Source: Laetmonice hystrix
Lineage: Eukaryota
Assembly: GCA_965235115.1 (NCBI GenBank)
Contig: OZ249436.1
Location: forward strand, 44,020,001 to 44,084,000
Length of the DNA stretch: 64,000 nucleotides
Reading direction: 5' to 3'
This document shows, in pieces, positions 9,401 through 36,884 of this stretch (its first letter is position 1; every line of letters begins with the position of its first letter). Under the pieces are notes generated by a model, which was not told the DNA's origin, made no database searches, and saw only the letters and a program-made list of their open reading frames with translations. A program made the translations under genes and the position numbers.

Positions 9401-10751
9401 CCATACATAATGCCATCCGACTGCCCCCTATACATAATGCCATCAGACTGTCCCCCATACATAATGACATCAGACTGTCCCCCATACATAATGACATCAG
9501 ACTGCCCCCATTACATGCCCCCATGAGATTTCAGTTAAAATTCCGGGAGACCCGATTTTTAACCCCAATAACAAGCAGGGTCAGAGGTCTCTCAGTGTAT
9601 ATGGAGTCTTGCCGGCCGAACCCACTCGTCAGTTATCCTGTTAAATAGTTGACCTCTGGGATATTTCCGATCCGTGATCGGTCAGTTATCCTGTTAGTTG
9701 ACCTCGCGGATATATTTCCGATCCGTGATCGGTCAGTTATCCTGTTAGATGACCTCGCGGATAGTTCCGATCCGTGATCGGTCAGTTATCCTGTTAGATG
9801 ACCTCGCGGATATATTTCCGATCCGTGATCGGTCAGTTATCCTGTTAGTTGACCTCGCGGATATATTTCCCAGCCGTGATCGGTCAGTTATCCTGTTAGT
9901 TGACCTCGCGGATATATTTCCCAGCCGTGATCGGTCAGTTATCCTGTTAGTTGACCTCGCGGATATATTTCCCAGCCGTGATCGGTCAGTTATCCTGTTA
10001 GTTGACCTCGCGGATATATTTCCGATCCGTGTTCGCTCAGTTATCCTGTTAGTTGACCTCGCGGATATATTTCCGCTCCGTGATCGGTCAGTTATCCTGT
10101 TAGTTGACCTCGCGGATATATTTCCGATCCGTGTTCGCTCAGTTATCCTGTTAGTTGACCTCGCGCCACATGTTGAGATAAAGAAGTCTACCGTAGGGTT
10201 GGATGAAAACTATCACAATCAGTCTGAGAATGGATCGTTTAGACGAGGCCTGCAGCATGACCTTCTGGGCCCCTACATCTTACAGACGACATCTAACATA
10301 GCCAACATTCCACACAGTGTCCTGATCTCAATCAACAAGCCACCATCCAGTGTTACGTGTCTTCTACGATGTTGAATACACCCACGCGTCACGACGCTAG
10401 TACCCCTTCAGTTTAACCCCCCACCCCCGTCCTCTAGGTCTCACGTTAGAGGGTTCTGATTACCCCCCCCCCTCGTACTCACGCTCTTTAATCTAACCGT
10501 TACAAAGTTTATTCTCAGTCCAAAGACATTGGCAGAAATAGCTCGTCTTTCGCATATCCGGTTAATCGAAAACCTTTCAGCATTTGAAGGAAAACTTGCA
10601 CCAGAGGTAGACATACACTGATTGAGAATATTGTATGTGAGTGTAGTCGAGACCACGTGGTCGGATTCATAGACCTGCATACGAAGGAAGTTCACCCAGG
10701 GCCTATTTCTGAGAAAGCCGGGACTATTTTCAGGGGTCAGTTGGGGGCCCC

Positions 10752-13015: not shown

Positions 13016-13431
13016 TAAACTTGAAAGCATCGACATGGACCCAATGGAAGCCTTTACTTCCAGCCCATCCGTACAGTCTGATGAGCACAGGCTTTTTTTC
13101 TGCGTCTCCTTTTTCCTGCCACTGATGATAATAATGATGACCTTAGTATTCAAAAAAAACAATTATCGTCTTTAATAGTGTCATGTGCGCCGTTGGACTA
13201 TTATAATATGCAGAGTAAGAATATAAAACGACTGCGTCAACATTCCGTATTTTTAGTAAAAGATTTTTTCGTAGATGATGTAATGTGGGGACTGGCACGC
13301 GTGTGCCGATATGTTCCTCTACACGCTCTGAGGGTTTCACGATTTGATCTCACTCCGAGGAGTAGTACAAGACAGAGGTAACAGATCGAAACTCTTCGCT
13401 TCCCTGTCACACGTGTCGTCGTTCATTTGTT

Positions 13432-14344
13432 CTAGGAACCGTCACAGAACTCAGATTCAAGTACAGATATCACGGTGCAGCTTGTTTTAGGAACCGTCAC
13501 AAAACACAGATTCAAGTACAGATATGACGGTGCAGCTTGTTGTAGGAACCGTCATAAAACACAGATTCAAGTACAGATATGACGGTGCAGCTTGTTTTAG
13601 GAACCGTCACAAAACACAGATTCAAGTACAGATATGACGGTGCAGCTTGTTTTAGGAACCGTCACAAAACACAGATTCAAGTACAGATATGACGGTGCAG
13701 CTTGTTTTAGGAACCGTCACAAAACACAAATTCAAGTACAGATATGACGGTGCAGCTTGTTTTAGGAACCGTCATAAAACACAGATTCAAGTACAGATAT
13801 GACGGTGCAGCTTGTTTTAGGAACCGTCACAAAACACAGATTCAAGTACAGATATGACGGTGCAGCTTGTTTTAGGAACCGTCACAAAACACAGATTCAA
13901 GTACAGATATGACGGTGCAGCTTGTTTTAGGATCCGTCATAAAACACAGATTAAAGTACAGATATGACGGTGCAGCTTGTTTTAGGAACCGTCACAAAAC
14001 ACAGATTCAAGTACAGATATGACGGTGCAGCTTGTTTTAGGATCCGTCATAAAACACAGATTAAAGTACAGATATGACGGTGCAGCTTGTTTTAGGAACC
14101 GTCACAAAACACAGATTCAAGTACAGATATGACGGTGCAGCTTGTTTTAGGATCCGTCATAAAACACAGATTAAAGTACAGATATGACGGTGCAGCTTGT
14201 TTTAGGAACCGTCACAAAACACAGATTCAAGTACAGATATGACGGTGCAGCTTGTTTTAGGAACCGTCACAAAACACAGATTCAAGTACAGATATGACAG
14301 TGCAGCTTGTTTTAGGAACCGTCACAAAACACAGATATGACGGT
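13432..14344. repeat. Minisatellite, 55-bp unit, ~16 copies
   Basis: TAGGAACCGTCACAAAACACAGATTCAAGTACAGATATGACGGTGCAGCTTGTTT. Confidence 0.95.
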
Positions 14345-16067: not shown

Positions 16068-17534
16068 TATCAGACTATCAGACGCTCTTAAAATCTGACA
16101 GGGGATTAAGCAGTGATTCCCACCATTTATTGAAAGGTCAGAAGAGGAAGGACTGCATGAGGTCAATGATTTGAAATGTTATATACTATGAAGAAGATTC
16201 GCGTTTTTATGGCGAATCTTTATTGGGAACACGAATCGGGAGATGTCAGCAATCACATTTTAGAGAGACTTTAAAAAACTGCACCAAATGGTACTTGTCC
16301 TCGTTTTTCTATTTGCCATGACTGTTTCATGCCTGGAAAACCAAATTTAATTTTCCATGACCTTTCATGTCCTGATGTTTCGGCAATCAGCAGCCTGGGT
16401 CAAACTACAGTGTGCCTTGTGAGCTATCGCACAAGCCTATAATGCCAGAGATGATCACGGAAGAATCAGATTCTGGGGCTAGAGTGGTTCCGTATAAAGG
16501 CGACTGGAGAGTTGAGAATATAACTAAAAATTGAAAATACCTTTAAAAAATGAAACTGGACTTAATGGCTGGTCCAAGTCCTATACCGTTCGAAGATCTG
16601 GCGTCTGGAAACACACGATAGCCCATTGAGAGTCAACTGATTTGGAACCTTGCCGCAGATTGAGCCCACTGACGGGGTACGGGTTCTATTGCTAGATCCC
16701 TTTAGAAGAGTTGTGTCCACCTATCGCCGAGTTACACCCTCACCTCTCCAGGTGGACACATAGCAACCGAGCCGAACTCTTCGTACTGTCAGGTTTTCAA
16801 CAGCGTCTGTTTCCAGACTACGACCGAACGCGGAGACCGGTGCCTCACAGTTCCCTACATTACTACAGTGGTGGTAATTGCTTTATATATCCCCCTCCAG
16901 TTCGAGGACCACAGAAAGGGTGTGCACATATACTTAACGTTATGATAGGATAAAAACAAAATTCCGCCGAAATTAAAAGTATTCAAGTACTACAGGTCTT
17001 AGGTAAAAATTAAATACAAATTTTGATACACATTTTACGTCTGTAAAATTTGTTTTAATGAACATAAACAGAAATTTTGAAAATCACACAGCAAATTTGT
17101 GGTCAGTGCCCTCTCCATATTGCAGTCACGTGTGCATGTCTTGAGTTCTTTGATATGCAAATTAGGGTGTTAGTCGCAAGGCCTATTGTAAGACGCTCTA
17201 TTGTTTTGTCTTCTGTTCTGCTACCCACTGACCCACAAAGATTATGTAAGTGGGGATTACCTGCATGAAGCAGTGAGCCCCACGAACCACCAGCAAGCAC
17301 CGCAACTACCAAGCTAGTTATACCTTGTCGTATATGGTGATGTCGGAAGCAAATTTTTGGTGCGGGGCGGGGGTGGGGGGCAACTAGGCCCTGTTTCAGG
17401 TAAATTTTAGGTTACAAGTGTGCGTGGCAGCGGTTAAATGGACAGAACTCAACCCTTTATAGGCCCGCTGAGACATGATTCTTGGGGGGGGGGGCAAAAC
17501 ATTTCCAGTTCTTTGGTGTTTGGGTGCGTGTGTA

Positions 17535-17607
17535 TGTTAATGGCGTAAAGTGTGGACAAGTGTCAGTTTACACACCCTCAAAGCGTGGACCATGGCAAAG
17601 CGTGGAC
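17535..17607 (+). repeat. Left terminal inverted repeat plus subterminal AAAG(T/C)GTGGAC motifs
   Basis: AAAGTGTGGAC at 17547, CAAAGCGTGGAC at 17579 and 17596; reverse-complement orientation relative to the right-end motifs. Confidence 0.75.
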
Positions 17608-19002
17608 GTCCACAGATTGTTTTCTTTCAAAAACCGACTTGTGAGGACTCTGTGTAGCGCCCCCTGTCGTCCCTTTCGTGAACTAGGCCATGTCCACCAA
17701 TAGCGGCGTTTAGCGGATGTGTGAGTGTGTGGTAGCCGCGCCGAGTGTATGTGCCCCTTTTCGCAGGTCCTCTCTTTATCGGTAACAGTAAGAATATAGT
17801 TTCACTAAAATCCGTTAGGGGGCTGCGCGCTCCCCGCAGCGATGTTTCACGTTGAGTTTTATATATTTTGATGGTGACTCTGCCTGGAGAGTGTCAGCAG
17901 GTCCACGGAACGCGCGGTCAGGGTCAATCAGTCCTCGGAGGGTGCGCAAGGAGCCAGTACACTCAGGTTAGTCTCTAACTTGGTAAAATAGTATTTTAAC
18001 CCGTATTAGACCCTACTTGACAATGTTGGAATACAAACAGGACGGTTGTTAGATCTACTGTCTTATTATTAACATAACAATTAACCCGTGTAGCCAATTA
18101 AAACCCTTCTAGACAATCAATGAGTATCAAAATTCGAGAAGGGCCCGAGAACACGCCCTCCCACTATCCGCCATATTACATTTCATCATCATCAATCATC
18201 CCCCATCTACATTCAGGAAATGTGGAGAATTCCTAGACTATATCAAAGCGCCACTTAGACCCATTATAAAGTTACCATTATAATAATTGGGGATGGCGCC
18301 TGCATAACTGCGAACAAACTGGGAGCCTGACCCTATTAATGTTAATCTTTTTTGGTACCATTCATTGTCCTCACTTTGAAGGCCACATTTTTCGTAAATG
18401 TGTCCAGACCTTTTAGCCTGGCTTTCCGTTCAGTGGCGGATCTAGGGGCAAGGGTGTAGCCTTAGGGGGTTTCCGGGTTGCCTGGAAACCTCCTCCCCTC
18501 CCCCAAAAAGATAATTAATAGATAATTAAATAGATATAAATGATTGACTAATATTATGGTTGGACCCCCCCCCCCCCACTTTTAGTTGGACCCCCCCCCC
18601 ATCTCGATTCTGCCTACACCCCGGAGGGGGTGTCTGCGACGTCCGAACCCCGCCCCCCCCCTCAAATTTCCCAAATTTCATTTTTAACCAAAATATAACA
18701 ATCTCTAGGAGGTGTAGAGGATAATTTCATTTTCCTAAAACATGGCCAAAGTTGTCCTGGGTGGCCAAAGTAACCCCAGTTTACTTATTCCATGTTTTAA
18801 TTGGTTTGTCATTTGTAAAAATTATTTTTTATGCCTGTATTAAACTCGGATAACCTTGTGTGTCCTCCCTTTGTATAGGCCTAGGTTTATATAATTACTT
18901 AGTTTGTGTCCTCACTCCTAACTTACTCAAGTGACCCCGTTGCACTAGGTTGATTATACTTTAAAAATTTGCAGACATTTTCACTTATTTTACATTAGGA
19001 AC

Positions 19003-20935
19003 ATGCCACGGCAGAGCAGGAAACCACCGGAAGAAGTGGCAAAGCAGTATATTCGATCAAATAGTGACCCACCTTGGATATGTGAACAACACATCAGTGA
19101 TGAAAAAGGTCAGTTCAAGATAAATGTATCTGACAAGCAGGCAGTTACCATTTCTTAATGAGCCATGATAATGAAACTATAATATTTGTAGGGATGGGAG
19201 GTGTATGTTCAAACAAGGGGAGGGTGCTTTCACTTTCAGTAGTGTTACGTAACATCATTATGGCTATATTCTTAGTGGTAGCCACTGGGGAAAAAACAGC
19301 AGTTGGTAAAACTTTGAGTACTGGTCATGGATATCATTTTTATGGTTTTAAAATTGAAATGGTTTGCTTTTACAATTCGTTTCTGTTTGGGACTGTTCTA
19401 GTTATTTATAAGACTAGACTATCAAGGTTATTACAGTAAAACTGTTGGGCTCAAGTTTGTGATCCATGGCTTGCTAATGAATCCCCGAGAGGCAGTAGCC
19501 ACCTAACTTTGGTTGGACCAAACTCAGATGAGGACAAATTACATTTTTTACAATTCCTAATGTCAAGCAAACATTCCTTTACTGATATAACAAAGCACAC
19601 CATTATTTTATTTTTTACCATAATGTAGTCCATATATAGTGGAATATGTAATGTGCTTTGTATTTTTTTTTAAATTAAAATTGTATAGGGGCACCAGGTA
19701 CTGCTCTCACTGTCCTTTCATCTGGGCCAATTATTTAGCATTTTTGGCACCCCCTCTCCCCTTCTTAAAACCTACAGCTGGAAATTAGGGGGGTGGGGGG
19801 TGGGGCTCGTAAATGCTTATTCTTGTTAGATTTGACCATGTTATGTACCCTATATACCTTTCACAAATTTAGACAGTGCCCCAAGGTTTCGTTGCCCCTG
19901 GAACAAGTCAAGTTTTGGAATCGCCCCCCCCCCCTTCCAAAGCTGCAACACTGAGCACAAGGAACCGATTCTTCTCTTGTCTCCAGCCTTCAGGATCGGG
20001 TGCTGCACTACACTAGCAGAGCCAACAAATTTTCATAGGGGTGGAAATGCTGAGACCAGTAATCCCTTTGGGGTGGCCCGGACATTGGTAGCCCTAAAAT
20101 GTAAATGTTGTGTGGACCAGTCCGTGGAGTGGCAAGTTAGGTGGCCAGCAGGCTTGAGTTTAGGGTAGCCACGTAAATTGTTGAACAGCCCCTAAAAGCA
20201 CATGTACTGTTTCAGGACGAGGGGTTGTGTGTTGCGACGATATCTTGCCAGGGCAGTTTGTGGCAGAATATAAAGGTGAACTAGTAACAGCTGATGAAGC
20301 ATCTGCACGGGAAGAGGAACAGGACAGCGTGTTCCGTTTTTTCTTCACGTGGCAGAAGAAGGAACTTTGGTGAGATTCTGCGATGTTATCTTTAGTGAAA
20401 GTAGAAGGTAATTTCTGTGTCTTTAAACAAAGGTCATGAATGATAAACATGACTACACATAGCACTATATTTGACTTCCCACTGTAATTATATTGCCTGT
20501 GGCTATGACCTTGACAAAGACTTGTTTTTTTATGTTTCTAGTGTTGATGCTTCAGAGGAGCCTGTAGCAGGCCCCAGACTTGGCCGACTTGTCAATCATG
20601 GAGAAAAGTCAGAAAGAAACAGTAGAATGAAAGTTGTGGAGGTGGAATGCATACCAAGGCTTTGCTTGTTTAGTACTTGGTGAGTCCTGTTTGATTTTAG
20701 AAGCCACAGATATGAACAACGACTACCATAGAAGTTTTCAGAAACATGGATACCATGTGGCTCCTCATTTCTATTTGACAGCTTTATGGAACATGATTAT
20801 CTGTGTTTTTGTAAAAAAAAAAGAAAGATTTTGTCTCATGAAGTGTACTTTCCTGACAGTGACATCGGACCTGGCACAGAAATTATGTATGACTATGGGA
20901 TCAAAGAAGAAGATATGCCATGGAAGAAGGCAAAG
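19003..20935 (+). CDS. Exons 1-4: SET-domain lysine methyltransferase (PR-Set7/KMT5A-like)
   Basis: Spliced translation MPRQSRKPPEEVAKQYIRSNSDPPWICEQHISDEK-GRGVVCCDDILPGQFVAEYKGELV...KELCVDASEEP...RLGRLVNHG...LCLFSTCDIGPGTEIMYDYG...PW; hallmark GRGV, EYxGEL, RLVNH and YDYG motifs. Confidence 0.9.
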
Positions 20936-23900
20936 GTTAGTGCCTTTGTATATTCCAGAGTCTCATAAAAACTTTTCCTTTCAGTTCGCGCTTTATTAGA
21001 CAGATTTCTAGTAATCTCTTGCCTTGTGAAAACTGTGTTATTTAGGGCATATGCGTAGGAATAGGGGTCTACAACCCCTCCCCCCATATCAAAGGTGAGG
21101 GGGAGGGGCTGAAGTGTCGTTCCGCAACACCCTGCTCCTTAAATCCTCCTTGGTCTCCCAGGAAGGACTAGACCACCGCGGGCCTCTTCATTTCTGTCAG
21201 AATTTGATCTCCAGAAGCCGGGAGATCCTGTTTTGGGCCTTCAAAATTAAAAATTTTCCGGGGAGCCTTCTGGACCCCATGCTGAATATAAAGTCTGCAC
21301 CTTCGGTTCGGTGCTTGCAGGGCACCACATAGCCGGCACTCTTAGGCCCCCCTAACAAAAGCTTCATATGCGCCTATTGGTTGTGGGTGAAAAAGGAATT
21401 GTGTGTGTCCCCCCTTTGTGTCCTCATATTGTTGCAAACTTTAATCTGGTCAAGTGGCGGGTGTGTCCACACTTATTTCAGTTCTAGGTTATAATGTCCT
21501 CACTTTGGTACATTTTTGGTCTAAGTGTGTCCTCACTTTGTAGCAATGAATACTTTTGTTTTTCCTAAGACTTACAAAAAGGCTAAGATTTCATTAATAC
21601 GTAATGGCTCTACGGCATAGGCCTACGGCGTACGGCATACATTGGAAATGGCCTGATTAAAGTGGGACAGATTCCATATTAGACTGGGATTGTATGGCAC
21701 GACTAAAGAGTAGTGTAGGAAGGAAAAATATATTGGGGGGGGGGGGGGGGAGGGGCAGAAGTGAAGTCACAATGACTTGCGCCTATGCTTTTTCATTGAG
21801 CCATGCGGTCATTTTATAAATATTTGGGGGGGGGGGGGGTGCAGCCCCCTCTGCCCCCAGCTTCCTACGCCCCTGCTATATGGCGTATGGAATAGGAGTC
21901 GCTCCCTGTAACGATTTTCGCCGTAACCGTATGCTTTCCGTAAGGGGAACTCTAAATAATTAATAATCACTAATCACGGCTTCCCTGGGGTCTTCCCTGG
22001 CCTTTGCACGCTACAAAGGCTTACCATGCAAGGACCGTATAAATTTTATGGAATCATCCGTATGCTCTTTACGTACGCCGTATGCCGTGGCCGTAGAGCC
22101 GTAACGCATTTATTGAATCTCAGCTTAAGGCCTCTACAAGTTTTAATATGATAATTATTTTGTTCGTTTGCATTAGTGGCTTAATGTTGATCGTGTCCCT
22201 GATAGTAATTATTTATCAAGTCCAAGAAATTAAATGGCACAGATGGCTATCTCCAGTAGAAAAGTATTATAGGTTGTCTGAAGACTCAGGGGTACCGAAA
22301 TATGGCTGTCTCTTTTTAAATGTTATGTTGTTTTCACAATTATATGAAGATTTTAAAAACTTTGCAGATACATCAACCTATTGGTTTGTATAGATATAAG
22401 ATTTTTGCTTTACATAGGCCTATGACGAACGTTTCCAATCAAATTCATGGGTGTCCGAAATCGGGGAGGGCCCAAACAGGGCAGTTACCCCCCCCCCCCC
22501 CCCGAATGGATAGCATTGTTTACAACACCATAAAAGAAAAGCTTAGAACTACACCCTGCGTGTCCTTCTTTATCCATTCAATAACTATATTTCAAAGACG
22601 TATACCCATATTTTTCCTGTTTAAAATGCCCCCATTAAAAAGTATTACCCTCTACCCTACCCCCTTCGGGAAATACGAACTATGCCTCTCTCAGGAATAT
22701 GTTCTACGGACGCCCATGAACACAAGTTGCTGTTATGTTGCCTTGGAAATGTCATCAGCCACGAATTATATTTACCGGTATAATCTCGATAATGTTATCA
22801 ATTTTTTTTATTCAACAATCGACGTCCACTTTGCCAGCAACACTCTAAAAGATCCTTCTTTCATTGCATTTGTCCTGCTGGTCTTCGGGCAATTCTTTGG
22901 CCCACTACGATTTAACTACTGAAAGATCACTGATATTTTTGCGTTAATGCATCATTTCAACGCCATCCCGTATCCTTTTTCCCTGATTATTCTTTTATGT
23001 AAGAGATTATACCAATATAATAAATTTCCACTCATGTATTTCTGTTTAAATATTTTCAAGTCGTGAGAAGCCCATGATTCAGAGATGTTTACTTACAGTG
23101 TTTTTGTAAAATATATTGAGCAGGTACAGCGGAACAGTTTCGACAGTGGGGGGGGGGGGCTATATCAGTATAACGGAGGTGAAACTATTGGAGATTTTTT
23201 ATTTAGATTTTATTATCAATTTGGTTCTCAATATTCATTCCCACCTTTAACTATGGAAGTCTTGGTCGACAAGAAATCGGGTGGGCCAAAAAATATTGGA
23301 ACACTCTTTTTTTGACTATAACTTCTACAATTACTCCGATGTCATAATGTTTTGCACATATCATGTGATTATTTGGGGCCTGTGGTACAAATTTCAGAAA
23401 GTGTCTGAAAGTGAAGCATGGATATGTAGGTTCACATTTGCAACAGCATGATACCATCCCAACTCAGCATTTCATTATACCTTAATGGCCAATGAAACAG
23501 CTAAATGTAAAACATAGCAAACAAAATAGAAGTATTTGGTAGCCTGTGTTGAATATTCTTTATTCCGTCAAGTTTAAAACCGATTATTTCCGCACCGTCA
23601 CAGGTCCAAACCTCACGAATGGTGTCAGTGATGCCCTACTGGGTCCGGTTGCCACGACTACCGGCCCAGAAATTGTCGGTGATGACCTCCTTTGTCCCGT
23701 TGCCATGGCTTCCACCCTTCAAGTTCCCGATAATGTTCTAAGTCCCGTTGCTAGAGTTGCTACCCCTAAAGTTACCTGTGATGACCTCCTGGGTCCAGTT
23801 CCCAAGGTTACTGCCCCTCACGTTGCCGGTGATGACCTCCTAGGTCCCGTTGCCACGGCTACCACCCCTCAAGTTGCCGGTGATGACCTCTTGGGTTCAG

Positions 23901-26900
23901 TTGCCACGGCTACCACTCAAGTTGCCGGTGAGGACCTCTTGGGTCCAGTTGCCACGGCTACCACTCCTCAAGTTGCCGGTGATGACCTCCTAGTTTCCGT
24001 TGCCACGGCTACCACCCCTCAAGTTGCCGGCGTGGACCTCCTAGGTCCCGTTGCCACGGCTACCACCCCTCAAGTTGCCGGCGATGACCTCTTGGGTCCA
24101 GTTGCCACGGCTACCACTCCCCAAGTTGCCGGCGATGACCTCCTAGGTCCAGTTGCCACGGCTACCACTCCTCAAGTTGCCGGCGATGACCTCCTAGGTC
24201 CAGTTGACAGGGCTAGCGCCCCTCGAGTTGCCGGCGTGGACCTCCTAGGTCCCGTTGCCACGGCTACCACCTCTCAAGTTGCCGGCGATGACCTCCTAGG
24301 TCCCGTTGCCACGGCTACCACCCCTCAAGTTGCCGGCGATGACCTCCTAGGTCCAGTTGACAGGGCTAGCGCCCCTCAAGTTACCGGTGATGACCTCCTA
24401 GGTCCCGTTGCCACGGCTACCACCCCTCAAGTTGCCGGCGATGACCTCTTGGGTCCAGTTGCCACGGCTACCACTCCTCAAGTTGCCGGTGATGACCTCC
24501 TAGTTCCCGTTGCCACGGCTACCACCCCTCAAGTTGCCGGCGATGACCTCCTAGGTCCAGTTGACAGGGCTAGCGCCCCTCAAGTTACCGGTGATGACCT
24601 CCTGGGTCCCGTTGCCACGGCTACCACCACTCAAGTTGCTGGCGATGACCTCTTGGGTCCAGTTGCCACGGCTACCACTCCTCAAGTTGCCGGTGATGAC
24701 CTCCTAGGTCCCGTTGCCACGGCTACCACCCCTCAAGTTGCCGGCGATGACCTCCTAGGTCCAGTTGACAGGGCTAGCGCCCCTCAAGTTACCGGTGATG
24801 ACCTCCTGGGTCCCGTTGCCACGGCTACCACCACTCAAGTTGCTGGCGATGACCTCTTGGGTCCAGTTGCCACGGCTACCACCCCTCAAGTTGCCGGTGA
24901 TGACCTCCTGGGTCTAGTTACCACAACTTCTGTCCATCAAGTTGTCAGTGATGCCCTCCCGTGGTCCGTTGCCATGGCTACCACCCCTCCATTTGTCAGT
25001 GATGCCTTTCTGGGTCCTATCGCCATGGCTACTGCCCCTCAAGTTGATGAAGTCCAGCCTAGTACATCCGCTACCAGTGCTCTGCCAGACAACAGTAATG
25101 AGATGATGATCACTGATTCCCAAAGTCCGGGCCAATCTAGTACAGGAGGTACGAGAATAATAACCAAGATCAATGTTGTTTCCGTCCTCGCTTAGTTTCA
25201 ACTTTGGTGTCCTCACTTTGTTTCAAGCCTGGTGTGTGTTCTTAGCTTGCTTCAGCCTTGGCATATGTCTGTCCTCACTTTGCTCCAACCTTGGTGTATG
25301 TGTCCCCATTCTGCTCCAACCTTGCTGTATGTGTCCTCACTCTGCTCCAACCTTGGTGTATGTGTCCTCACTCTGCTCCAACCTTGGTATATGTGTCCTC
25401 ACTCTGCTCCAACCTTGGTGTATGTGTCCTCACTCTGCTCCAACCTTGGTATATGTGTCCTCACTCTGCTCCAACCTTGGTGTATGTGTCCTCACTATGT
25501 TTGAAGCTTGCCAGGTGTGACTGCACCATGTTTCGACCATGTGTCGTCACTTTGATATTCTCAACATTGGGGTCTGTTTCCTCAGGTTGTTTTAACCTTG
25601 ATGTGCGTTATCTTCACCTGTCTCCGACCCTATATTTAATTGTTCATCTTTTAGGTGCAGCCGCTACTGATGTCATCGACCACGCGTCATTTAGTGAAGA
25701 TGGTGAAGATGAAGATAGTATGGAGGACTATGTACCAGGCTCATCAAGCAGCGAATCAAGTTCTGACTATTCGGATGTCATACCCTTTCAGGGTCTGCCC
25801 TCTGCAAAAGGAAACCAGGAAGCTAAGTACAGAAAAGCCATTTCCAAGATGTGCTCAAGAGCCCTGGAAGCTCGACAAGCCCCACAAGCATCCACCAGTT
25901 CAGATAGTTTCATCAGCCCGTCTAGTGCCCTGGGAGCCCGACAAGCCCCACAAGCATCCACCAGTTCAGATAGTTTCATCAGCCCGTCTAGTGCCCTGGG
26001 AGCCCCACCAACCTCCGGTTCGGATGATGTCCTAGGATCACAAAGTGCCCTGGGGACATCACAAGCCAATGATGCAGTTTTGCATAACAGAAAAATAAGA
26101 GTCATGGTGGCAGACAATGAACAAGGAAGAAAATGGGACAAAATCTATTACTGTTTATATTGTCAGAAGCCACAGAAGAAATTGCCAAGACATATAACTA
26201 CTCAACATCCGGACGAGGTGAAAGTTGTGGAGTACTGCAATGAAAAGAACAGTCTAAGGAAATCACAGAAAATGTGTCTTCTTAGAAACCTAGGTAACCA
26301 CAAACATAACTGTGAAGTGCTGAGAAAGGGAGAAGGGATTTTGATAGTAACTCACAGACCAGTGAGGGCAACCCTACCAGACGAATACGGTCCATGTGAA
26401 ATTTGCTTTGCCTACATCCTCAGAAATGATCTCTGGAGGCACAGATGTCCGCTTAAGGATGAACAGGAAGAGGAACCAGTGAAAAAGAAACGCAGAGCAG
26501 TCAGTTGTAAACTCCTTCTTCCGCCCCCACCAGGTATCAGCGAAAATTTGCACACAATCACCCATTCCATGAGGGCCGACAACATATCCAGAATCACAAA
26601 AAGTGACAACCTCATCCTGGCCCTTGGAGAGAAGTTGTATCAAAAGGTTGGGCACAATAAATTTCAACATAATTACATCAGATGCAAGCTAAGAGAGATG
26701 GGACGTCTCCTTGCCCAATTACGTACTGATACTGGGAAGTCAAATTCAAAGCTCGAAGACTTCATTGAGCCTGACCAGTTTAGGGTTGTACTAGCTGCAG
26801 CAAGACGAGTCTGTGGATTCGAAAAGGAAGGTCAAACGTACAAAACGCCATCACTTGCATTGAAGTTAGGCCATAGTCTTCGAAAGTGTGCCAAGATCTG

Positions 26901-29335
26901 CCAAGGACAGTCAATAGAGTTGAATAACGAAGAAAAACAGAAAAAGGTGAAATCTTTTCTAAAACTGATGGATATAAACTGGACAGAGGAGATGTCAACT
27001 CAGGCACTGCGTACCTTGTATGAATTAAAAAGGAACAAGGTCAAACTTCTTCCTCTTGTTGAAGATGTCCACTTGTTGTCGGCGTATCTAAAGGAAACGG
27101 GAAAGAAAGCTGCTGCTTACTTAACAGCAAGCCAGAGTGAGGATCCAAAATATACTTCTCAATGGGACGTTCTTCGAGATGTTTTGTTGGTTCGACTCAT
27201 CCTCTTCAACAGGCGGCGACAAGGTGAGGTTTCACACATGTCTGTTGAGGACTACGCCAAGGTCCATCAGGCTGGTCATGAAGGCTTTGTGATGGAAAGT
27301 TTAACCACTCTGGAACAGAATCTCAGTCGCCACTTCTTTCGTGTTGAGATCCGCGGAAAGCGTGGAAACACTGTGCCGGTACTTCTCAACAAAGAGTGTA
27401 AAGAATGGCTGGATGTCTTAGTGGCTACCAGGGAAAAGGTTGGTATTGCTCCCGGAAATGACTACCTCTTTGCCAGATCACATTATGGATCTCTTGACCA
27501 TGTCAGAGGTTCTGACTGCTTAAGGGACATGAGCGAACAGTGTGGAGCAAGAGAGCCTCAGCTACTACGAACGACTAAACTACGCAAACAGATTGCGACA
27601 ATGAGTCAGATCTTAAACTTAAAAGATCACGAGCTTGACGTACTAGCCCGGTTCCTCGGCCACGATATCCGAGTACACAGGGAGTATTACCGCTTACCAG
27701 ACCAAACCCTTCAAGTGGCCAAAGTGACAAAACTTCTCTTGGCAATGGAAAAGGGAGGGCAAGGCCTACAGCTTGGACAGAGTCTAGATGACGTCAACGT
27801 AAACGTGGNNNNNNNNNNNNNNNNNNNNNNNNNNNNNNNNNNNNNNNNNNNNNNNNNNNNNNNNNNNNNNNNNNNNNNNNNNNNNNNNNNNNNNNNNNNN
27901 NNNNNNNNNNNNNNNNNNNNNNNNNNNNNNNNNNNNNNNNNNNNNNNNNNNNNNNNNNNNNNNNNNNNNNNNNNNNNNNNNNNNNNNNNNNNNNNNNNNN
28001 NAAACAAAATAGGGATTCCTTTACAGAAATTGATGCCAATTCTGGACAGTCGAGTGAAAGCGATGGGGACCAGGGAAGCCAACAGGACAGTTCTGCCAAC
28101 ACTGAAGCATCGAAACGTGTATCCCAAAGAAATATCGCAAGTCAACTGGAGATAACTCCGGGGAGTACCACAGCAAGTCAACAGAAGAACACCAAACAAC
28201 TTAAAGGTAGAAATCACTAATTTCGCCCCCCCCCCTGCATTTTCACTTCTGTTGATCGCAACTTTAAAATAGATTTATTTAAACAGGATTCTAATGCATC
28301 AGGGAGTAACTAATTTATTAGCATGATGTCAGGTGCTGGTGATCATAATCATTCCCACCACTGTCCCAGACCGTAAGAAATCTTCTCCACGGCCCCTTCA
28401 CCTGAAAGCCCTGGCTTGCTTTTGTGCGTCCTCACTTTGTAGGATGAGTGTAATGCCTATAGCCATGTCCTCAGTCTGTTGTGTGTGTCCTCACTTCGCG
28501 GTGTCGGTGTGGACTGTGTCCTCACTTTGTGCCATTGGTGTGTTGTGTGTCCTCGCTTTGTAAAGTGGGTTTAATACATAAACCCATGTTCTCAGTCACT
28601 CAGTGTCTTGTGTTTGTCCTCACTTCGTGTACTGGTTCGTAGTGTGTCCTCACTTTGTAGCATTGGTGTGGTGTGTGTCCTCACTTTGTAGCATTGGTGT
28701 GGAGTGTGTCCTCACTGTGTAGCATTGGTGTGGCGTGTGTCCTCACATTGTAGCATTGGTGTGGCGTGTGTCCTCACATTGTAGCATTGGTGTGGCGTGT
28801 GTCCTCACTTTGTATCATTGGTGCGGTGTGTCCTCGCTTTAATTGTAAGGTGTGTTTTATGCATAAACCCATGTCCTCAGTCACTCAGTTTCTTGTGCGT
28901 GTTCTCACTTTGTAGCATTGGTATGGAGTGTGTCCTCACTTTGTAGCATTGGTGTGGTGTGTGTCCTCGCTTTGTAGCATTGGTGTGGTGTGTGTCCTCG
29001 CTTTGTATCATTGGTGTGGTACTTAATTATTTTAAATATGAAGTTTTTGTTTATTCTGAGTTTAAATTAAAGTAAAAATTCATGAATGACTTCGTTACAT
29101 TGTTATAGAGCCAGCAGAAACATCTGTTCGCCGGCCCCAGAAGAAAAGAGGCTGGAACGAGACTGAGGTCAACACTGTAATGAGATACTTCAGTACCGAC
29201 ATCGCGCTGGGGAACCTGCCGGGAAAATCACAAATAGAAGCTATGCTTGCTGCAGAACAGCCATTGGAACACCGGTCGTGGAGGAATGTCAAAGATTTTA
29301 TTAGAAATCGCATTGTTAGTCAGAAGAAACTTTAA
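19003..29335 (+). CDS. Spliced SET domain - repeat linker - Zn finger - tyrosine recombinase - Myb/SANT-like fusion protein (~1550 aa or more)
   Basis: Exons 19003-19108, 20216-20369, 20542-20679, 20860-20935, 23398-23425 (tentative), 23604-25148, 25655-27808+ (N gap), ~28013-28206, 28333-28372 (tentative), 29109-29335. All visible junctions are GT-AG and phase-compatible; the junction inside the gap cannot be checked. Confidence 0.7.
21579..22126. mobile_element. MITE nested in intron 4 of the YR-element gene
   Basis: ~55-bp imperfect TIRs (AAGGCTAAGATTTCATTAATACG...CTCTACGGC / GCCGTAGAG...ATTGAATCTCAGCTT). Confidence 0.7.
23604..25148 (+). CDS. Repeat-rich linker exon (17-aa GDDLLGPVATATTPQVA units, 51-bp period)
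   Basis: Acceptor cacag|GT at 23604, donor GGAG|gtacga at 25148/25149; 1545 bp with no stop; phase 1 matches the acceptor of the YR exon at 25655. Confidence 0.7.
25205..25500 (+). repeat. Intronic 31-bp array carrying the element terminal motif
   Basis: TGTATGTGTCCTCACTCTGCTCCAACCTTGG. Confidence 0.9.
25655..27808 (+). CDS. Tyrosine recombinase exon with N-terminal Zn fingers
   Basis: YCLYCQKPQKKLPRHITTQH (C2H2) and CEIC...HRC. Catalytic-type motifs LFNRRRQGE (27211), RGKRG (27352), TTKLRK (~27577), FLGHDIRVHREYY (27658-27690). About 718 codons without a stop up to the N gap. Confidence 0.9.
27809..28001. other. Assembly gap (N run) inside the YR gene
   Basis: Ns. Confidence 1.
28425..29000 (+). 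repeat. Intronic ~31-bp array carrying the element terminal motif
   Basis: GTGTGTCCTCACTTTGTAGCATTGGTGTGGT. Confidence 0.9.
29109..29335 (+). CDS. Terminal exon: Myb/SANT-like helix-turn-helix module
   Basis: ttatag|AG CCA...; PAETSVRRPQKKRGWNETEVNTVMRYFSTDIALGNLPGKSQIEAMLAAEQPLEHRSWRNVKDFIRNRIVSQKKL*, W...W spacing typical of Myb-like folds. Domain identity is inferred. Confidence 0.7.
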
Positions 29336-30023
29336 ATGTGTAAAGATCCGGGTTCCGTTCGTGTCTGGTTACTTAGCATTGTTATGAGCACAATTTTTAA
29401 GACACATTAAAAGGATTTCAGTGAAAATCACAAATAGAAGCTATGCTTGCTGCAGAACAGCCATTGGAACACCGGTCGTGGAGGAATGTCAAAGATTTTA
29501 TTAGAAATCGCATTGTTAGTCAAAAGAAACTTTAAATGTGTAAAGATCCGGGTTCCGTTCGTGTCTGGTTACTTAGCGTTGTTATGAGCACAATTTTTAA
29601 GACACATTAAAAGGATTTCAGTGAAAATCACAAATAGAAGCTATGCTTGCTGCAGAACAGCCATTGGAACACCGGTCGTGGAGGAATGTCAAAGATTTTA
29701 TTAGAAATCGCCTTGTTAGTCAAAAGAAACTTTAAATGTGTAAAGATCCGGGTTCCGTTCGTGTCTGGTTACTTAGCGTTGTTATGAGCACAATTTTTAA
29801 GACACATTAAAAGGATTTCAGTGAAAATCACAAATAGAAGCTATGCTTGCTGCAGAACAGCCATTGGAACACCGGTCGTGGAGGAATGTCAAAGATTTTA
29901 TTAGAAATCGCATTGTTAGTCAGAAGAAACTTTAAAAGTGTAAAGATCCGGGTTCTGTTCGTGTCTGGTTACTTAGCGCTGTTATGAGCACAATTTTTAA
30001 GACACATTAAAAGGATTTCAGTG
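29224..30023 (+). repeat. Four tandem 200-bp copies of the last-exon end plus 3' UTR
   Basis: AAAATCACAAATAGAAGC recurs at 29224, 29424, 29624 and 29824. Confidence 0.95.
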
Positions 30024-30259
30024 TATTTTCGCAACTTCCTGTTTTTCTTGATGCAGTTTTAGGGGTAGCTCTAGGTACCCCACCTGACTGTAGTGATTAG
30101 GCCCCTATATATCCCTCCTGACTGTAGTGCTAGAAGTATCTCTTTTTCAAAGCAGCGGACGTTTATTTGACTCTCAAGTAGTACTGAAACTGAAGAATCG
30201 GGGAACTTCTCGCAATTTTTATCATTACGGGTTGATGCATGCCCCTGGGTTCTTAGTAT

Positions 30260-30532
30260 GGTGCGTGTCCTCACTTCGTAGCATTGGTGTGCGGTGTGTC
30301 CTCAGTTTGTAGGAAGTTTAATGCCTATACCCATGTCCTCGGTTTGTTGTGTGTGTCCTCACTTTGGAGCATTGGTGTGGTGTGTTTCCTCACTGTGTAG
30401 CATTGGTGCGATGTGTGTCCTCACTTTGTAGCATTGGTGTGATGTGTCCTCGCTTTGTAGGATGGTTTTAATGCATAAAGCAATGTCCTCAGTAAGTGAG
30501 TGTAGCATTGGTGTGGTGTGTCCTCGCTTTGT
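30260..30532 (+). repeat. Third array of the element terminal motif
   Basis: Repeated GTGTCCTC(A/G)CTTTGTAG...ATTGGTGTG. Confidence 0.85.
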
Positions 30533-31070
30533 AAAGATAATGAACAATTCGTCCAATTCCGCTTTGTTTTAAAAATTGTTTGTATTTTATTGGATATTTA
30601 AATAGAGTATTTGCATTATATCTGTATCTTAGATAAAATTGTATTCGTTGTTGAACCCAACCTTTAATTTAACGGGTATCTAGATATACATGTATTTCTG
30701 GCATTATTGTCCCTGGTGAAGAGTAAAGATCGCGTGTAGTTTACCTACACAAAGTTAAGATGCCTTATTTCACAATTTTAAGGAGTTTTCCCAGCACTAC
30801 AAGCAGAGTATTGTATGAAGGAATAACCTGAAGGCGTCAGGGGGACAAGTTGCCCATCATTGCTTTTTCCAACCCTTCTACTGTCAAGAGTAGACGAAAT
30901 AGGAAACGTGTTTAAAATAACAGTAGGTGAAGTTGAAGTAGGCCAAATCCGAGTAGATGAGGTCGGGTTTTATGTCTGAGATTTAGGTGGTCGCACTGAG
31001 TTGCTCTAATTAATCGTGAGTAATCTCCTAAGATAGTATTCGATCGAGACTGAACCAAAGTGGTCTTGAT

Positions 31071-31730
31071 CAGGCGCGGATCCAGGGGGTGCATTGGGTG
31101 CACGTGCACCCCCCTTGAGTCCCCATTTTTATATATAGGCCTATATTAATCAAACCCCTCCCGTTCCAAGTGACCCGCATCTGGCAAACCGGCACCAAAA
31201 CCCACTGACCCGCGAGGACAGCCATAGGACCCACCTGAATGATAAATCTAGGGCGTTTTAGGCCTAGATTTATCATTTAGGTGGAGCCTATCCTCTTTTT
31301 TGCCACTTTGTGTCGTTTGTTGAGGATAGTCTGCGGCTTGATCACACGTGCATTAGTAAATTTAGCTCAGATTACATATGCGCCATCAGGTGGCCTATAG
31401 ATCTATAGCCACGCATATCTGATAGATGGCGATTGTGCCCCCCCCCCCCCCTTTTTTTGCAGACTGACTTTTTAACGAATTGCTAAAAAAGCTAGGCCTA
31501 TTTTCAGCTGACTCTAAGACCTTGCAGCCTATGTTGTTCCCAGATGCCAGGAAAACGCATATTTGGCACTTTATTTTTAGGCTTATATTATTATTGAAAC
31601 TTGGGACCTATATGTAAGTAGTCGTAAAATAGTGATAAGAACTGATGCACCGTCCTATACTTTGGGGACCTCACAAGTATCTTTGATGGTGCACCCCCCC
31701 CCCCCTACAGAGCAACTGGATCTGCCCCTG
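31071..31730. mobile_element. G-run MITE nested in the 3' part of the YR element
   Basis: CAGGCGCGGATCCAG / CTGGATCTGCCCCTG imperfect TIR (12/15). Confidence 0.5.
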
Positions 31731-32055
31731 TTGATGATGGGTTGGTTTCATCAGTTGGATAATTTTTAAGGCGGACTGCAGTAGGCCTAGTTTCATTTAG
31801 AATAAATTGCATACGCAGTCCTGCTTTTTACATGCAGTATACGAAATGTCCTCGTACTACCCCATCCATTGGGTATGGATGTGTCCTTACTTTGGTGACC
31901 CAATTAGCTTTCAATACACATGTGGTCCCACCTTTGATAGATTTTGTCCACACACAAAAAAATGTTAGAACTTAACGAAATTAGAGTTTAAGCCTCATTA
32001 GGTTAATTTAATATACCATGCAAAATAATGGCCTAATATCTTTAGAAATAAAAGA

Positions 32056-32106
32056 GTCCACATTTTGTAGGTTTCAGACACATGTCCCCACTTTCCACCA
32101 TTAACA
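32056..32106 (-). repeat. Right terminal inverted repeat
   Basis: GTCCACATTTTG...GTCCCCACTTTCCACCATTAACA, followed by CGTA(TG)n; AATAAA at 32047-32052 just inside. Confidence 0.75.
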
Positions 32107-32107
32107 C

Positions 32108-32110
<3 letters not shown>

Positions 32111-32141
<31 letters not shown>
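32111..32141. repeat. (TG)n microsatellite at the right junction
   Basis: Pure TG run just after the right TIR. Confidence 0.95.
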
Positions 32142-32143
<2 letters not shown>

Positions 32144-32412
32144 GGGGGGGGGGCATGGCCCCTGTGATCCTCCGACATCACTGAACTGTATGCTCCCGCT
32201 TGGAAGTGACATACCATATTGTATAGCTCCACATAACGTTGAAACTACATCGATTATAAAGTAGCTTGGTGCAATTTTTGGTGTAGTTTTAATTCAGTTT
32301 AATATAGGCCTATATATCGCGCAGTATAAACATTGTAGGAAACATTGTACAGAACGTTTGGCGTGATCCCTTAAAAATGGGCGCGTTTATAAACGTTTAT
32401 TGTCCAAGTTCT

Positions 32413-32532
32413 GGGCCCGGTTCACAAACAAAGTCAAGTCAATTTTAATTAACTTGAAACCAATCAGATTTAAGTAAAATTGACTTCAAGTCAATTAAAA
32501 TTGACTTGACTTTGATTGTGAACCGGGCCCTG
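32413..32532. mobile_element. MITE family A copy 2 (opposite orientation)
   Basis: Matches the reverse complement of 12891-13013. Confidence 0.85.
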
Positions 32533-33770
32533 GAGGCGCCAGCTAGGGGACATCGGCCTGGTGTTATGAGAAGTGGCGGTCGGTGCTCGGCACACACACC
32601 GCCCCAGTTCCCGGCCAGTCTCCGGGGTAGATTTGATATAGGGTCACTATTATCTAGATAATAGTGACCGGGGAGGTTATTATTATCTAGATAATACCTA
32701 CTGGGGGTAGGTATTAGATAGGGGGTAGGTATTAGATATGACACCGGCGCTAAACGATATGTCAATAGAATTGGTCTGATTTATTAAACGTATTTTTGGG
32801 ACAGTAGGATAAGCAACCTGTGTTTTAAAGTGGTTGTCTCACGAATTTCAAGTCATACGTAGCGTTTCCCAAATAATATGTCTGCATTGGGGGTCTCCAA
32901 TATGATCCAAAGCCCCGCTACCTTTCGATGTGAACTTTGCGGGTATTATGTAAAATACATTCAAAAAGTCGCGAAATCTTATTTCCGTCACTGAAAATGA
33001 CCTACTTCCGAAAATGGCTTCCGAGACCTCGGTAGTTGTTTTTTTTTATATTCGTATGTACACTGCTATGCAAATTATTTGTACTAGCGAAAATAGATTT
33101 CGAATCTACACCACAACAACACAACGTTCAAACGATTCAAACAAAAGTTTACATGGGGGCCTTTCTGTACTCGCCGTGTATGACATTGGAAGCTATTCCT
33201 GTTCTTCTCAAAAAACAATGACGCACTCCCTACAGGTTAGGATGGCCTTGCCCTGGCACAAAATCAGATAGAAACATGAGTGTGCAGAAAGTGTAAACAT
33301 GTGGTGAGACTTGGCAAGCAAACCCGTCCAGTCCCAGACCCAAAACAAAAACTAATGTTGCGGTTTTCCCTCTAACCATGGTGAAACTTATGTCTCTCTC
33401 CTTCTGGCAAAGATTAGGCTATACATTTCAAGATCCTCCTCCCAACTTTGTGAAGGGTTTGTGGGTGGAGTGGGGGGGGGGGGGGTGTCCTTTTGTCATT
33501 ACACAAGGCGTGGTAGCATTTTTCTGGAGACTTCATTAGGCGTTCAAAAAGAGGGACGTCGATTTATGACATAGGCCTACTAGTTACCATGGGGACGGTC
33601 ACGGCCCGGCCGATATAGGAACCGACGTCGGCAGATGAATCATTTTTTTATTCTTTTAGTTGTAAAATGAAATTTTAGTTAGTATAACGTTAACGTATAT
33701 AATTCTCGACCCTGGTAAAGGCATTTGTGTTCTGTTTAAGGTTCTTGGATAAATGTGCATAGATCCATAC

Positions 33771-35820: not shown

Positions 35821-36884
35821 ATGTATTTATTAACTTGAAAGTAACGAATCAGCCTGAGAGAGACTATTATTCCCTGCTATACGACTGACAATAGATGCTA
35901 TCAATACGGTATCTATTGTAGCGGTTTATTGTTTGTTGCATTGACCCTGTACGCCAGTCAATTACAGTCAACTATTTACTCGGTGATAGAGGGAAACGGT
36001 CATAGTGTCCCCGGCGTCTGGATTTCACTTGGGCAGTGGGACGTAGAAATTGTGTCTTTATGAATGTGAACTTAAGTTTGCCCATAAAACCTTTTCGTGT
36101 TTCACTCAGTGCTCACTTATTTTCTTTGGGCAAGAATTGGTTTTGGAGGGGAGAAACAAATTTGCATATCTGTGACAAATATTATGTTGACATTGACGCC
36201 AGGTGCCGACTGTCGCCGAAAGGACGTTGCTGTCGGTCGTTGTTACCATATAATATTTGTCACCAATATCTTGTGGAGGGGGGGGGGAGGTCTGGGGTCA
36301 TTCTGTGTTGGCACATGACTGTCAACCCGGGTATGACTACGAGGCTTGATAAAAACGCCAGCAGTTGGAGTAATGATTTAGCGTTTAGGAAAAGGAAATT
36401 CCGGTACTTTTTAGAATCTATTTTTAATTTAATTTTACACATACCCTAGACCTAGACCTATAACCGCCATCTCCTCTTATTTTTTAACATTTTAATTTTT
36501 TCATTTCTGAGGAAAAATGTTGGCACGTGCCTACAGTGCCTTTAATGGAAGCAACGCGCCGGGACACGAAGTAGTTCTGTGGAAACACCACTCTGGAGGT
36601 CCAGCTTGATCTGCCCTACACGGGGTGAGTTTAAAAAAGGAAGGTACGAAGCCTTGAGCGGGGGGGGGGGGCCCTCCCCGAAAAAAAAATGAAAATTAAA
36701 GCGCCAAGTATTTATCTGGCATCTGGGAACAAAATTCAAGATCTTATAGTTAGCTGGAAACAAACTGAAAAAAAGGATATTTGCTAGTCCGCAGAAATGA
36801 TGGGGTGGAGGGGGGGGGGGGGGAGCAGCGCACGCCCCCTCTAAATCCGCCTCTGCTTTTACAAGCACATCGTTATTATAAGTA

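Follow-up and report, generated by a model that had tools for sequence, protein, structure and literature searches.

The 14.6-kb stretch at positions 17535-32106 of the window (the whole 64-kb stretch of DNA that was analysed, Laetmonice hystrix contig OZ249436.1, positions 44,020,001 to 44,084,000) is best read as an apparently intact Crypton-type DNA transposon, whose single spliced gene encodes a KMT5A-type SET domain together with a predicted tyrosine recombinase. Like its relatives the element sits at a (TG)n microsatellite, and, as inferred from this target, it probably belongs to the CryptonV lineage. The mobility of this particular copy is an extrapolation from related families, and methyltransferase activity is inferred from homology. 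Literature searches found no paper describing a fusion of a SET domain to a recombinase in a transposon.

Results

Boundaries of the element

The two ends of the element form an inverted repeat that pairs at 26 of 30 positions. To assess whether such a match could arise by chance, the region 16500-33500 was shuffled 20 times, and the best 30-mer inverted match at least 5 kb apart reached only 20-22/30. Independent evidence for the boundaries came from an 11-nt motif, GTCCNCNCTTT, which has 26 exact hits in the window (0.57 expected). All of these hits lie from 17547 to 32094, with the first inside the left terminal inverted repeat (TIR) and the last inside the right TIR. The three leftmost copies are on the minus strand and the rest on the plus strand, such that the motif points inward at the left end and rightward everywhere else. 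Runs of G10 on both flanks (17484-17494 and 32144-32153) were considered as a possible target duplication, but their order relative to the TG tract is mirrored rather than direct and such runs are common in the window (27 runs). The positions of all features are collected in Table 1.

Table 1. Features of the element and its junctions (positions in the window)
Position	Strand	Feature	Details
17523-17534		Left junction	Short degenerate TG-like stretch (GGTGCGTGTGTA); by analogy with L002/L003, part of it may belong to the element
17532-17537 and 32108-32113		Direct GTATGT at both junctions	In TG-rich sequence this may be chance
17535-17564	+	Left TIR	One inward-facing motif copy (GTCCACACTTT on the minus strand, 17547-17557)
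17580-17613	-	Two motif copies and palindrome	Minus-strand copies at 17580-17590 and 17597-17607; palindrome GTGGACGTCCAC at 17602-17613; the L002 family has the same layout about 60-80 nt from its left tip
19003-20935	+	Four SET-domain exons	19003-19108, 20216-20369, 20542-20679, 20860-20935; KMT5A/SETD8-like; GxG, RLVNH and EIMYDYG intact; all introns GT-AG
21405-21540	+	Motif cluster	Four copies in the long intron after the SET exons
23573-25148	+	Linker exon	About 28 tandem copies of a 51-bp (17-residue) unit, open in one frame; the acceptor (AAG) is the least certain junction
25207-25554	+	31-bp tandem array of the motif	9-10 copies, filling the intron 25149-25654
25655-27808	+	Large exon, running into the gap	Acidic/Ser-rich stretch; zinc-finger-like CxxC...HxxxxH (26152-26208) and CxxC...HxC (26395-26448); predicted tyrosine recombinase core-binding plus catalytic domains (about 26518-27768)
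27208-27690	+	Catalytic candidates	R in NRRRQGE (27208-27228), K in RGKRG (27352-27366), T..R in TKLRK (27574-27588), H and Y in GHDIRVHREYY (27658-27690)
27809-28001		Assembly gap	193 N, length estimated
28002-28206	+	Acidic/Ser-rich coding segment	Ends at donor AAAG|GTAGAA (phase 1)
28426-29005	+	Motif copies in 31-bp arrays	About 16 copies within the intron 28207-29108
29109-29335	+	Last exon	Conserved three-helix DNA-binding-type tail (W..E..V...PGK...L..R.W..K...N); stop TAA at 29333-29335; phase matches the previous donor
29223-30122	+	200-bp tandem repeat	4.0 copies at 98% identity over 29223-30023 (Tandem Repeats Finder); an overlapping 300-nt family from a separate repeat search, whose last copy is at 72%, carries it to 30122; re-duplicates the 3' part of the last exon and its stop codon
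30265-30531	+	Motif copies	Seven further copies in the 3' non-coding part
32077-32106	-	Right TIR	Last motif copy (GTCCCCACTTT, 32084-32094)
32107-32140	+	Right junction	CGTA plus (TG)15, the target microsatellite

Structure of the gene

The element contains one gene of eight exon segments with canonical GT-AG splice sites, and no stop was found in 1401 codons before the assembly gap or in 143 codons after it, apart from the terminal one. The initial annotation, which proposed a TIR-bounded tyrosine recombinase element with a gene of about ten exons, was correct in its structural claims and placed the limits of the SET exons exactly, while its exon number is an overcount. The upstream reading frame and the downstream coding-like frame, which splices in phase to the last exon, do not match at the nominal length of the gap; they would match only if this length were 2 mod 3, and 193 is 1 mod 3. 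As the length is only an estimate, neither continuity nor frame across the gap can be decided, and an intact reading frame is not proven. Related open reading frames (ORFs) stop 6-16 codons after the equivalent position, so an intron may lie in the gap, which falls in the poorly conserved acidic linker after the recombinase domain. An alternative read-through frame across the gap (NKIGIPLQ...) has no homologue support and does not splice to the last exon.

Predicted domains of the encoded protein

The large exon is predicted to fold as a two-domain tyrosine recombinase. An AF2 model had a pLDDT of 80, and the top ~40 Foldseek hits were all tyrosine recombinases (XerH, XerA, XerD, Cre, lambda Int, Tn1549 Int), although the E-values are modest (4.6e-4) and the TM-scores low because the relative position of the two domains differs. 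The R, K, R, H and Y positions are invariant or nearly so in 22 homologues, while His-II of the canonical R-K-H-R-H/W-Y set is a threonine. Sequence-only searches did not detect the recombinase: Pfam gave no significant family for the recombinase exon, and PDB profile searches with two alignments found only chance zinc-finger or PdxS matches. Weak Pfam Phage_integrase hits did appear in three homologues. The recombinase assignment thus rests on structure prediction plus conserved residues. No reverse transcriptase, RNase H, DDE transposase or other enzyme domain was found by Pfam on the large exon and on ten other ORFs of both strands.

The upstream exons encode a SET domain. Exon 2 alone passes the Pfam threshold (23.2 bits against a 22.4 cut-off), and the spliced SET domain is 41% identical to that of the frog homologue P0112 (E 2e-25). 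At the other end of the protein, the Myb-like tail proposed in the initial annotation is only partly supported. A three-helix model of the tail had a pLDDT of 81, and Foldseek returned mostly homeodomains with RAP1 Myb lower down, all with weak E-values; there was no Pfam match, and two invariant W residues lie 42 positions apart. The tail is a predicted three-helix, homeodomain-like helix-turn-helix (HTH).

To investigate whether the fusion is genuine, homologues were examined. The same domain order is found in P0112 and P0110, the order SET-recombinase-tail is the same in frog, fish and two further loci examined (L001 and L005), and in two homologues (P0019 and P0007) the SET C-terminus and the recombinase share one uninterrupted ORF. 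SET is present in 16 of 40 long family representatives, whereas some family members carry other N-terminal domains (chromo, OTU, BRCT). SET is frequent in the lineage but not universal.

Related copies and the (TG)n target

To look for evidence of mobility, related loci were compared. Two copies of a related family (L002 and L003) are about 16.2 kb long and about 99% identical, have 21/22 inverted ends, differ in their outer flanks, and lie in different (TG)n loci with (TG)n on both sides. This family shows no detectable SET. Several loci per genome encode proteins that fall in one cluster at 90% identity in Hemibagrus and Brachyhypopomus, and 10,417 clusters at 50% identity match the recombinase profile. 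The nearest relative (P0001, 72% identity) lies on two contigs, and P0093 on three.

(TG)n lies on the gene strand directly after the right end, in the same orientation, in all six copies examined from five families (the window, L001, L002, L003, L004 and L005). L005 has a 20/25 TIR and a right tip (CACCATAAACG) resembling that of the window (CACCATTAACACG). No convincing TIRs were found for L001 and L004 within the DNA examined; their left ends may lie outside this range or be degraded. The left flank of the window element holds only a short degenerate TG stretch. Both the oriented (TG)n target and the polar motif arrays had been missed in the initial annotation.

Discussion

Taken together, these results support, with good confidence, a model in which the element is a Crypton-type transposon, with a tyrosine recombinase as its only mobility enzyme, belonging to a very large animal lineage that integrates in one fixed orientation into (TG)n microsatellites. 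The mechanism is inferred. The recombinase would excise the element as a circle, on which the two TIRs become the inverted arms of a lox/att-like core site around a TG-like spacer. Tyrosine recombinases act on two inverted arms around a 6-8 bp spacer (PMC3212892), although the spacer implied by the L002 ends would be longer. Strand exchange with a (TG)n tract would then insert the element, with the asymmetry of TG versus CA fixing its orientation. The repeated GTCC(N)C(N)CTTT motif (GTGTCCTCACTTTG), present in both ends and in the internal arrays, is the likely binding site for one of the DNA-binding modules of the protein. The SET domain would be tethered to element DNA and methylate a lysine, by homology H4K20 or a non-histone substrate, on element or target chromatin. 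That the element is autonomous and that its integrase carries a histone-mark writer, as the initial annotation proposed, remain inferences from homology.

An alternative but unlikely explanation is that the locus is a fossil or domesticated copy, derived from such a transposon but now an immobile, single-copy host gene or a dead element that retains its ends. Consistent with this, no second copy of this family was seen (without a search of the source genome), the TIR arms differ at 4 of 30 positions, the 200-bp tandem duplication has re-copied the 3' end of the last exon, NCBI annotates homologues as ordinary genes, and Crypton recombinases have been domesticated repeatedly (PMC3212892). However, the open frame runs through 1401 + 143 codons with all splice sites canonical, the catalytic residues and SET motifs are intact, the ends, junction sequence and motif arrays are preserved, and close relatives are demonstrably multi-copy.

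It is very unlikely that the locus is a composite, in which a recombinase-only element landed next to or inside an unrelated host SET-domain gene. The SET-to-linker splice does use a weak AAG acceptor across a 2.6-kb intron, the L002/L003 family lacks a detectable SET, and other N-terminal domains occur in the family. Nevertheless, the single ORFs of P0019 and P0007, the shared domain order and the recurrence of SET among the representatives argue against it, and element-specific motif copies lie on both sides of the SET exons, which the TIRs enclose. A fortuitous inverted repeat in a region mis-joined around the gap is least likely of all: although an N gap lies inside the gene and tandem arrays and G/C homopolymer runs complicate assembly, the TIR exceeds all shuffles, the motif distribution is bounded exactly by the TIRs on both sides of the gap, sequence on both sides of the gap is colinear with single homologous proteins, and related loci from other assemblies have the same architecture.

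Tyrosine recombinase DNA transposons are the least understood class of eukaryotic mobile DNA; their ends are described as nearly featureless and activity was first seen only recently (PMC9977147). The element and its relatives give this class a testable anatomy of inverted ends, an oriented (TG)n target and arrays of a candidate protein-binding motif. Thousands of gene models annotated as 'uncharacterized' or 'KMT5A-like' in fish, amphibian, mollusc and echinoderm genomes appear to be the gene of this transposon, and a recombinase that targets (TG)n in one orientation could also be a useful tool. A more speculative reading, which we consider doubtful, is that the animal genes matching this recombinase form a largely undescribed superfamily of microsatellite-targeting transposons with a recombinase fused to an active KMT5A-type methyltransferase, such that the element writes a mark such as H4K20me1 on itself or on its (TG)n target as part of transposition, for example to recruit repair or replication factors to the excised circle or the new insertion.

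Comparison with known systems

In classical Cryptons (CryptonF/A/I/S; Goodwin 2003; Kojima & Jurka 2011, PMC3212892; active CryptonF-1_cRei, PMC9977147), as here, the tyrosine recombinase is the only enzyme and there is no reverse transcriptase. Their presumed mechanism is a circular intermediate and recombination between a short terminal sequence and a similar target, their copy number is low, and their recombinase is often fused to extra DNA-binding domains. They are described as lacking TIRs, with only 4-6 bp direct repeats at the termini (PMC3212892, PMC8969392), and are usually a few kb long, whereas this element is 14.6 kb with 30-nt TIRs, internal motif arrays and a SET domain. CryptonA/F recombinases (and the derived genes KCTD1, ZMYM2-4 and QRICH1) match Pfam DUF3504; no such hit was found at E <= 0.1 for the window protein, nor for 50 homologues at the thresholds used (E <= 0.01 and E <= 0.001). 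The DIRS and Ngaro retrotransposons have a reverse transcriptase and RNase H next to the recombinase and split direct or inverted long terminal repeats, none of which were found here, where the ends are 30-nt TIRs only. CryptonV, described from cnidarians (Kapitonov & Jurka, Repbase Reports 2012, cited in PMC8869645) and named as a possibility in the initial annotation, includes families that insert specifically into microsatellites, and it is the (TG)n target that links the element to this group.

Bacterial and phage tyrosine recombinases (XerH/XerD/XerA, Cre, lambda Int, Tn1549 Int) are the best structural matches over both the core-binding and catalytic domains, and the TIRs can be read as the two arms of a core site on the circular form, as in the Tn1549 circular intermediate. 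There is, however, no detectable sequence similarity, and the window protein differs in its threonine at the His-II position and its long eukaryotic N- and C-terminal additions.

Among solved structures, the SET domain of the family is closest to KMT5A (also SETD8 or PR-Set7, the H4K20 monomethyltransferase; E 4e-25, against 3e-17 for an unnamed SET-domain protein, 4ldg, and 3e-12 or weaker for the MLL, EZH2 and NSD histone methyltransferases), and the best PDB hits of P0112 are KMT5A. The window copy keeps the GxG, NH and YDY motifs and the PW flank, while frog and fish homologues have D in place of the NH histidine. The gene is not the host KMT5A gene; the domain sits at the N-terminus of a recombinase inside a transposon. 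SETMAR (Metnase) likewise combines a SET methyltransferase domain and a transposon recombinase/transposase in one polypeptide, but appears to be an immobile primate host gene that captured a mariner DDE transposase. The element described here is the mirror image of this arrangement, with the fusion carried by the mobile element itself and made to a tyrosine recombinase.

Terminal repeats and a boundary-restricted motif

To determine whether the two ends proposed in the initial annotation are genuine, the terminal sequences were compared with each other and with shuffled DNA. The two ends form a real inverted repeat, pairing at 26 of 30 positions, whereas in 20 shuffles of 16500-33500 the best 30-mer inverted match between sites at least 5 kb apart was 20-22 of 30. 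A second, independent feature marks the same boundaries. The core GTCCNCNCTTT occurs 26 times in the 64-kb window, against 0.57 expected, and every hit lies between 17547 and 32094, with the first inside the left repeat and the last inside the right repeat. The three leftmost copies are on the minus strand and the other 23 are on the plus strand. A 14-mer version of the motif allowing two mismatches gave 39 hits, all on the plus strand and all inside the element. The copies cluster as three 31-bp tandem arrays together with a smaller group.

The surrounding sequence is itself rich in repeats. The whole window is crowded with more than 25 unrelated minisatellite arrays (periods 12-76 bp, up to 51 copies) and has almost no long open reading frames outside the element. 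The region, or the genome, seems unusually prone to tandem-array formation, which may also explain the arrays inside the element. In addition there are 27 G or C homopolymer runs of 10-17 nt, nine of them inside the 14.6-kb element and one on each flank about 40 nt from the ends, which may be real sequence or a sequencing/assembly artefact. An inverted repeat 300 nt to the right of the element looks like a foldback or a small MITE, and another within the long intron of the element's gene is possibly a nested MITE-like insertion.

Coordinates of features in the window and in two related loci
Feature	Coordinates	Detail
Left terminal inverted repeat	17535-17564	
SET exon	19003-19108	
SET exon	20216-20369	
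SET exon	20542-20679	
SET exon	20860-20935	
Smaller group of motif copies	21405-21540	
Inverted repeat pair in the long intron	21582-22124	53 nt, 79%, 437 nt apart
Linker exon	23573-25148	
Intron	25149-25654	largely motif arrays
Motif array	25207-25554	31-bp tandem array
Large exon	25655-27808	
Zinc-finger-like motif	26152-26208	
Zinc-finger-like motif	26395-26448	
Assembly gap	27809-28001	193 N
Coding segment after the gap	28002-28206	
Intron	28207-29108	largely motif arrays
Motif array	28426-29005	31-bp tandem array
Last exon	29109-29335	
200-bp tandem repeat	29223-30122	4.0 copies at 98% identity over 29223-30023 (Tandem Repeats Finder); a last diverged 72% stretch carries it to 30122
Motif array	30265-30531	31-bp tandem array
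Right terminal inverted repeat	32077-32106	
Inverted repeat right of the element	32413-32530	52 nt, 92% complementary, 14-nt loop
Second assembly gap	1135-1340	206 N, between two tandem arrays
Minisatellite arrays	323-62349	e.g. 8166-9516, 13427-14336, 36884-38324, 48193-49306, 54188-55577, 58997-60381
G or C homopolymer runs	27 sites	e.g. 17484-17494, 21735-21750, 22488-22503, 31438-31451, 32144-32153, 33472-33485
176-bp satellite array, L002	2700-8900	roughly 6 kb
176-bp satellite array, L003	2400-8700	roughly 6 kb

Gene structure

The splice sites of the gene model are canonical throughout. The first four exons give 158 codons, and together with the linker exon and the large exon they make 1401 codons without a stop. 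After the assembly gap, the final two segments give 143 codons ending in TAA. The weakest junction is the AAG acceptor at 23573. The 200-bp tandem repeat re-copies the last 110 nt of the coding sequence with its stop codon, and so leaves extra partial exon copies downstream of the gene.

The large exon reads up to the gap in one frame, while the coding-like frame that follows starts at 28002 (KQNRDSFTEIDANSGQSSESDGDQ...) and is the one whose donor at 28206 matches the phase of the acceptor at 29109. The two frames would be continuous only if the gap length were 2 mod 3, and 193 is 1 mod 3, although the length is only an estimate and this decides nothing. Homologous open reading frames end 6-16 codons after the equivalent of 27807, so an intron may be hidden in the gap. 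The gap lies after LLLAMEKG, in the non-conserved acidic linker, so no part of the recombinase domain is missing.

Predicted domains of the encoded protein

The spliced N-terminus aligns to residues 2-151 of a frog protein (P0112) at 41% identity (E 2e-25), and exon 2 alone passes the Pfam SET threshold. Among solved structures the P0112 SET domain is closest to KMT5A/SETD8 (E 4e-25), followed by an unnamed SET-domain protein (4ldg) at 3e-17 and the MLL, EZH2 and NSD histone methyltransferases at 3e-12 or weaker. The window copy keeps KGRGV, RLVNH and EIMYDYG.

The large exon has no Pfam or PDB sequence match. However, an AlphaFold model built on 22 homologues has a mean pLDDT of 80, and its best ~40 Foldseek matches are all tyrosine recombinases, covering both the core-binding and the catalytic domain (XerH, XerA, XerD, Cre, lambda Int and Tn1549 Int; best E 4.6e-4, probability 1.0). 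Three homologues give weak Pfam Phage_integrase hits. Invariant or nearly invariant residues fit the catalytic set: R in NRRRQGE, K in RGKRG, R in TKLRK (with T where His-II usually is), H in GHD and Y in HREYY. Two conserved Cys/His motifs, which are zinc-finger-like, precede the recombinase. No reverse transcriptase or DDE transposase is present.

The last exon is conserved in frog, fish, snail and three of the related loci. It models as a three-helix bundle (pLDDT 81) that resembles homeodomains and, less well, Myb domains, all with weak E-values. The tail, described as Myb-like in the initial annotation, should therefore be read as a homeodomain-like HTH.

The SET-recombinase fusion recurs in homologues

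To assess whether the fusion is real, the window pieces were compared with homologous proteins and loci. They are colinear with single annotated proteins from a frog and a medaka relative, in the order SET, recombinase, tail. In two other members (P0019 and P0007) the SET C-terminus, a tandem-repeat linker and the recombinase lie in one uninterrupted open reading frame, and two related loci, L001 and L005, show the same order on DNA. Sixteen of 40 long representatives of distinct clusters carry a Pfam SET domain. A variable tandem-repeat linker between SET and recombinase is also a family trait. Taken together, these results show that the fusion is real. Single family members carry chromo, OTU, BRCT or, by UniRef name, Tudor domains in place of SET, and these could be alternative chromatin-related modules or chimeric gene models.

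Related copies lie at (TG)n microsatellites

The recombinase family is very large, with 299 hits among the 8000 candidates scored in a first search and 10,417 clusters at 50% identity for the profile. Members occur in echinoderms, a hemichordate, molluscs, teleosts and a frog. In at least two fish species, several loci per genome encode proteins that fall in one cluster at 90% identity.

The decisive comparison came from one assembly, in which two contigs (L002 and L003) encode an identical 864-residue protein that is 45% identical to the window's. The contigs share about 16.2 kb at about 99% identity, and outside that stretch they are unrelated. Both copies lie inside (TG)n tracts. Their ends are TTTACTAAGTAAACCGGGGACA... 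and ...TGTCCCCGGTTTACTTACTAAA, a 21/22 inverted repeat, with GTGCGTGCG adjoining the left end and CAGGTATG(TG)n adjoining the right end. This related element carries an array of a 176-bp satellite where the window element has its SET exons, and no SET domain was detectable there.

The window's junctions are alike, with GTGCGTGTGTA adjoining TGTTAATGG... on the left and ...CCATTAACA adjoining CGTATG(TG)15 on the right. L005 (a 52% family) ends ...GGTGTCCTCGGTTGGCACCATAAACG directly before (TG)40 and has a 20/25 inverted partner 13.7 kb upstream, while L001 and a further locus, L004, end ...GACAGGTA directly before (TG)n. So in six copies from five families the right end is followed at once by (TG)n on the gene strand. 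Each TIR carries, some 12-25 nt from its tip, a family-specific version of the same motif ending in GGACA: AAAGTGTGGACA, AACCGCGGACA and AAACCGGGGACA. Both the window and L002 have a head-to-head motif pair (GTGGACGTCCAC, CCGGGGACGTCCCCGG) about 60-80 nt from the left tip.

The mechanism is inferred. Tyrosine recombinases act on two inverted arms around a short spacer (PMC3212892). If the element is excised as a circle, as proposed for Cryptons and supported by the clean excisions seen in Chlamydomonas (PMC9977147), the two TIRs come together as such a site, with a TG-like spacer. Exchange with a (TG)n tract would insert the element, and the TG/CA asymmetry would explain the fixed orientation. 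The GTATGT found at both window junctions may be the crossover remnant, but in TG-rich DNA it may also be chance. The motif arrays are candidate binding sites for the zinc-finger or HTH modules.

Comparison with known elements

The initial annotation proposed a TIR-bounded tyrosine-recombinase element encoding a spliced SET-recombinase-Myb fusion; the finding is real and this interpretation is essentially right, although mobility and integrity of this particular copy and any methyltransferase activity remain unproven. Public annotation calls these proteins 'uncharacterized' or 'KMT5A-like', and our literature searches found no paper reporting a SET domain fused to a transposon tyrosine recombinase. 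The closest class is Crypton. Classical Cryptons are described as lacking TIRs, a defining feature that does not hold here, and CryptonA/F recombinases match DUF3504, which this one does not. The one published statement that fits closely is that some families of CryptonV, a Repbase group described from cnidarians, insert specifically into microsatellites. The element is best described as a Crypton-type, probably CryptonV-related (inferred from its target), (TG)n-targeting transposon with inverted ends, polar motif arrays and a SET-recombinase-HTH fusion gene.
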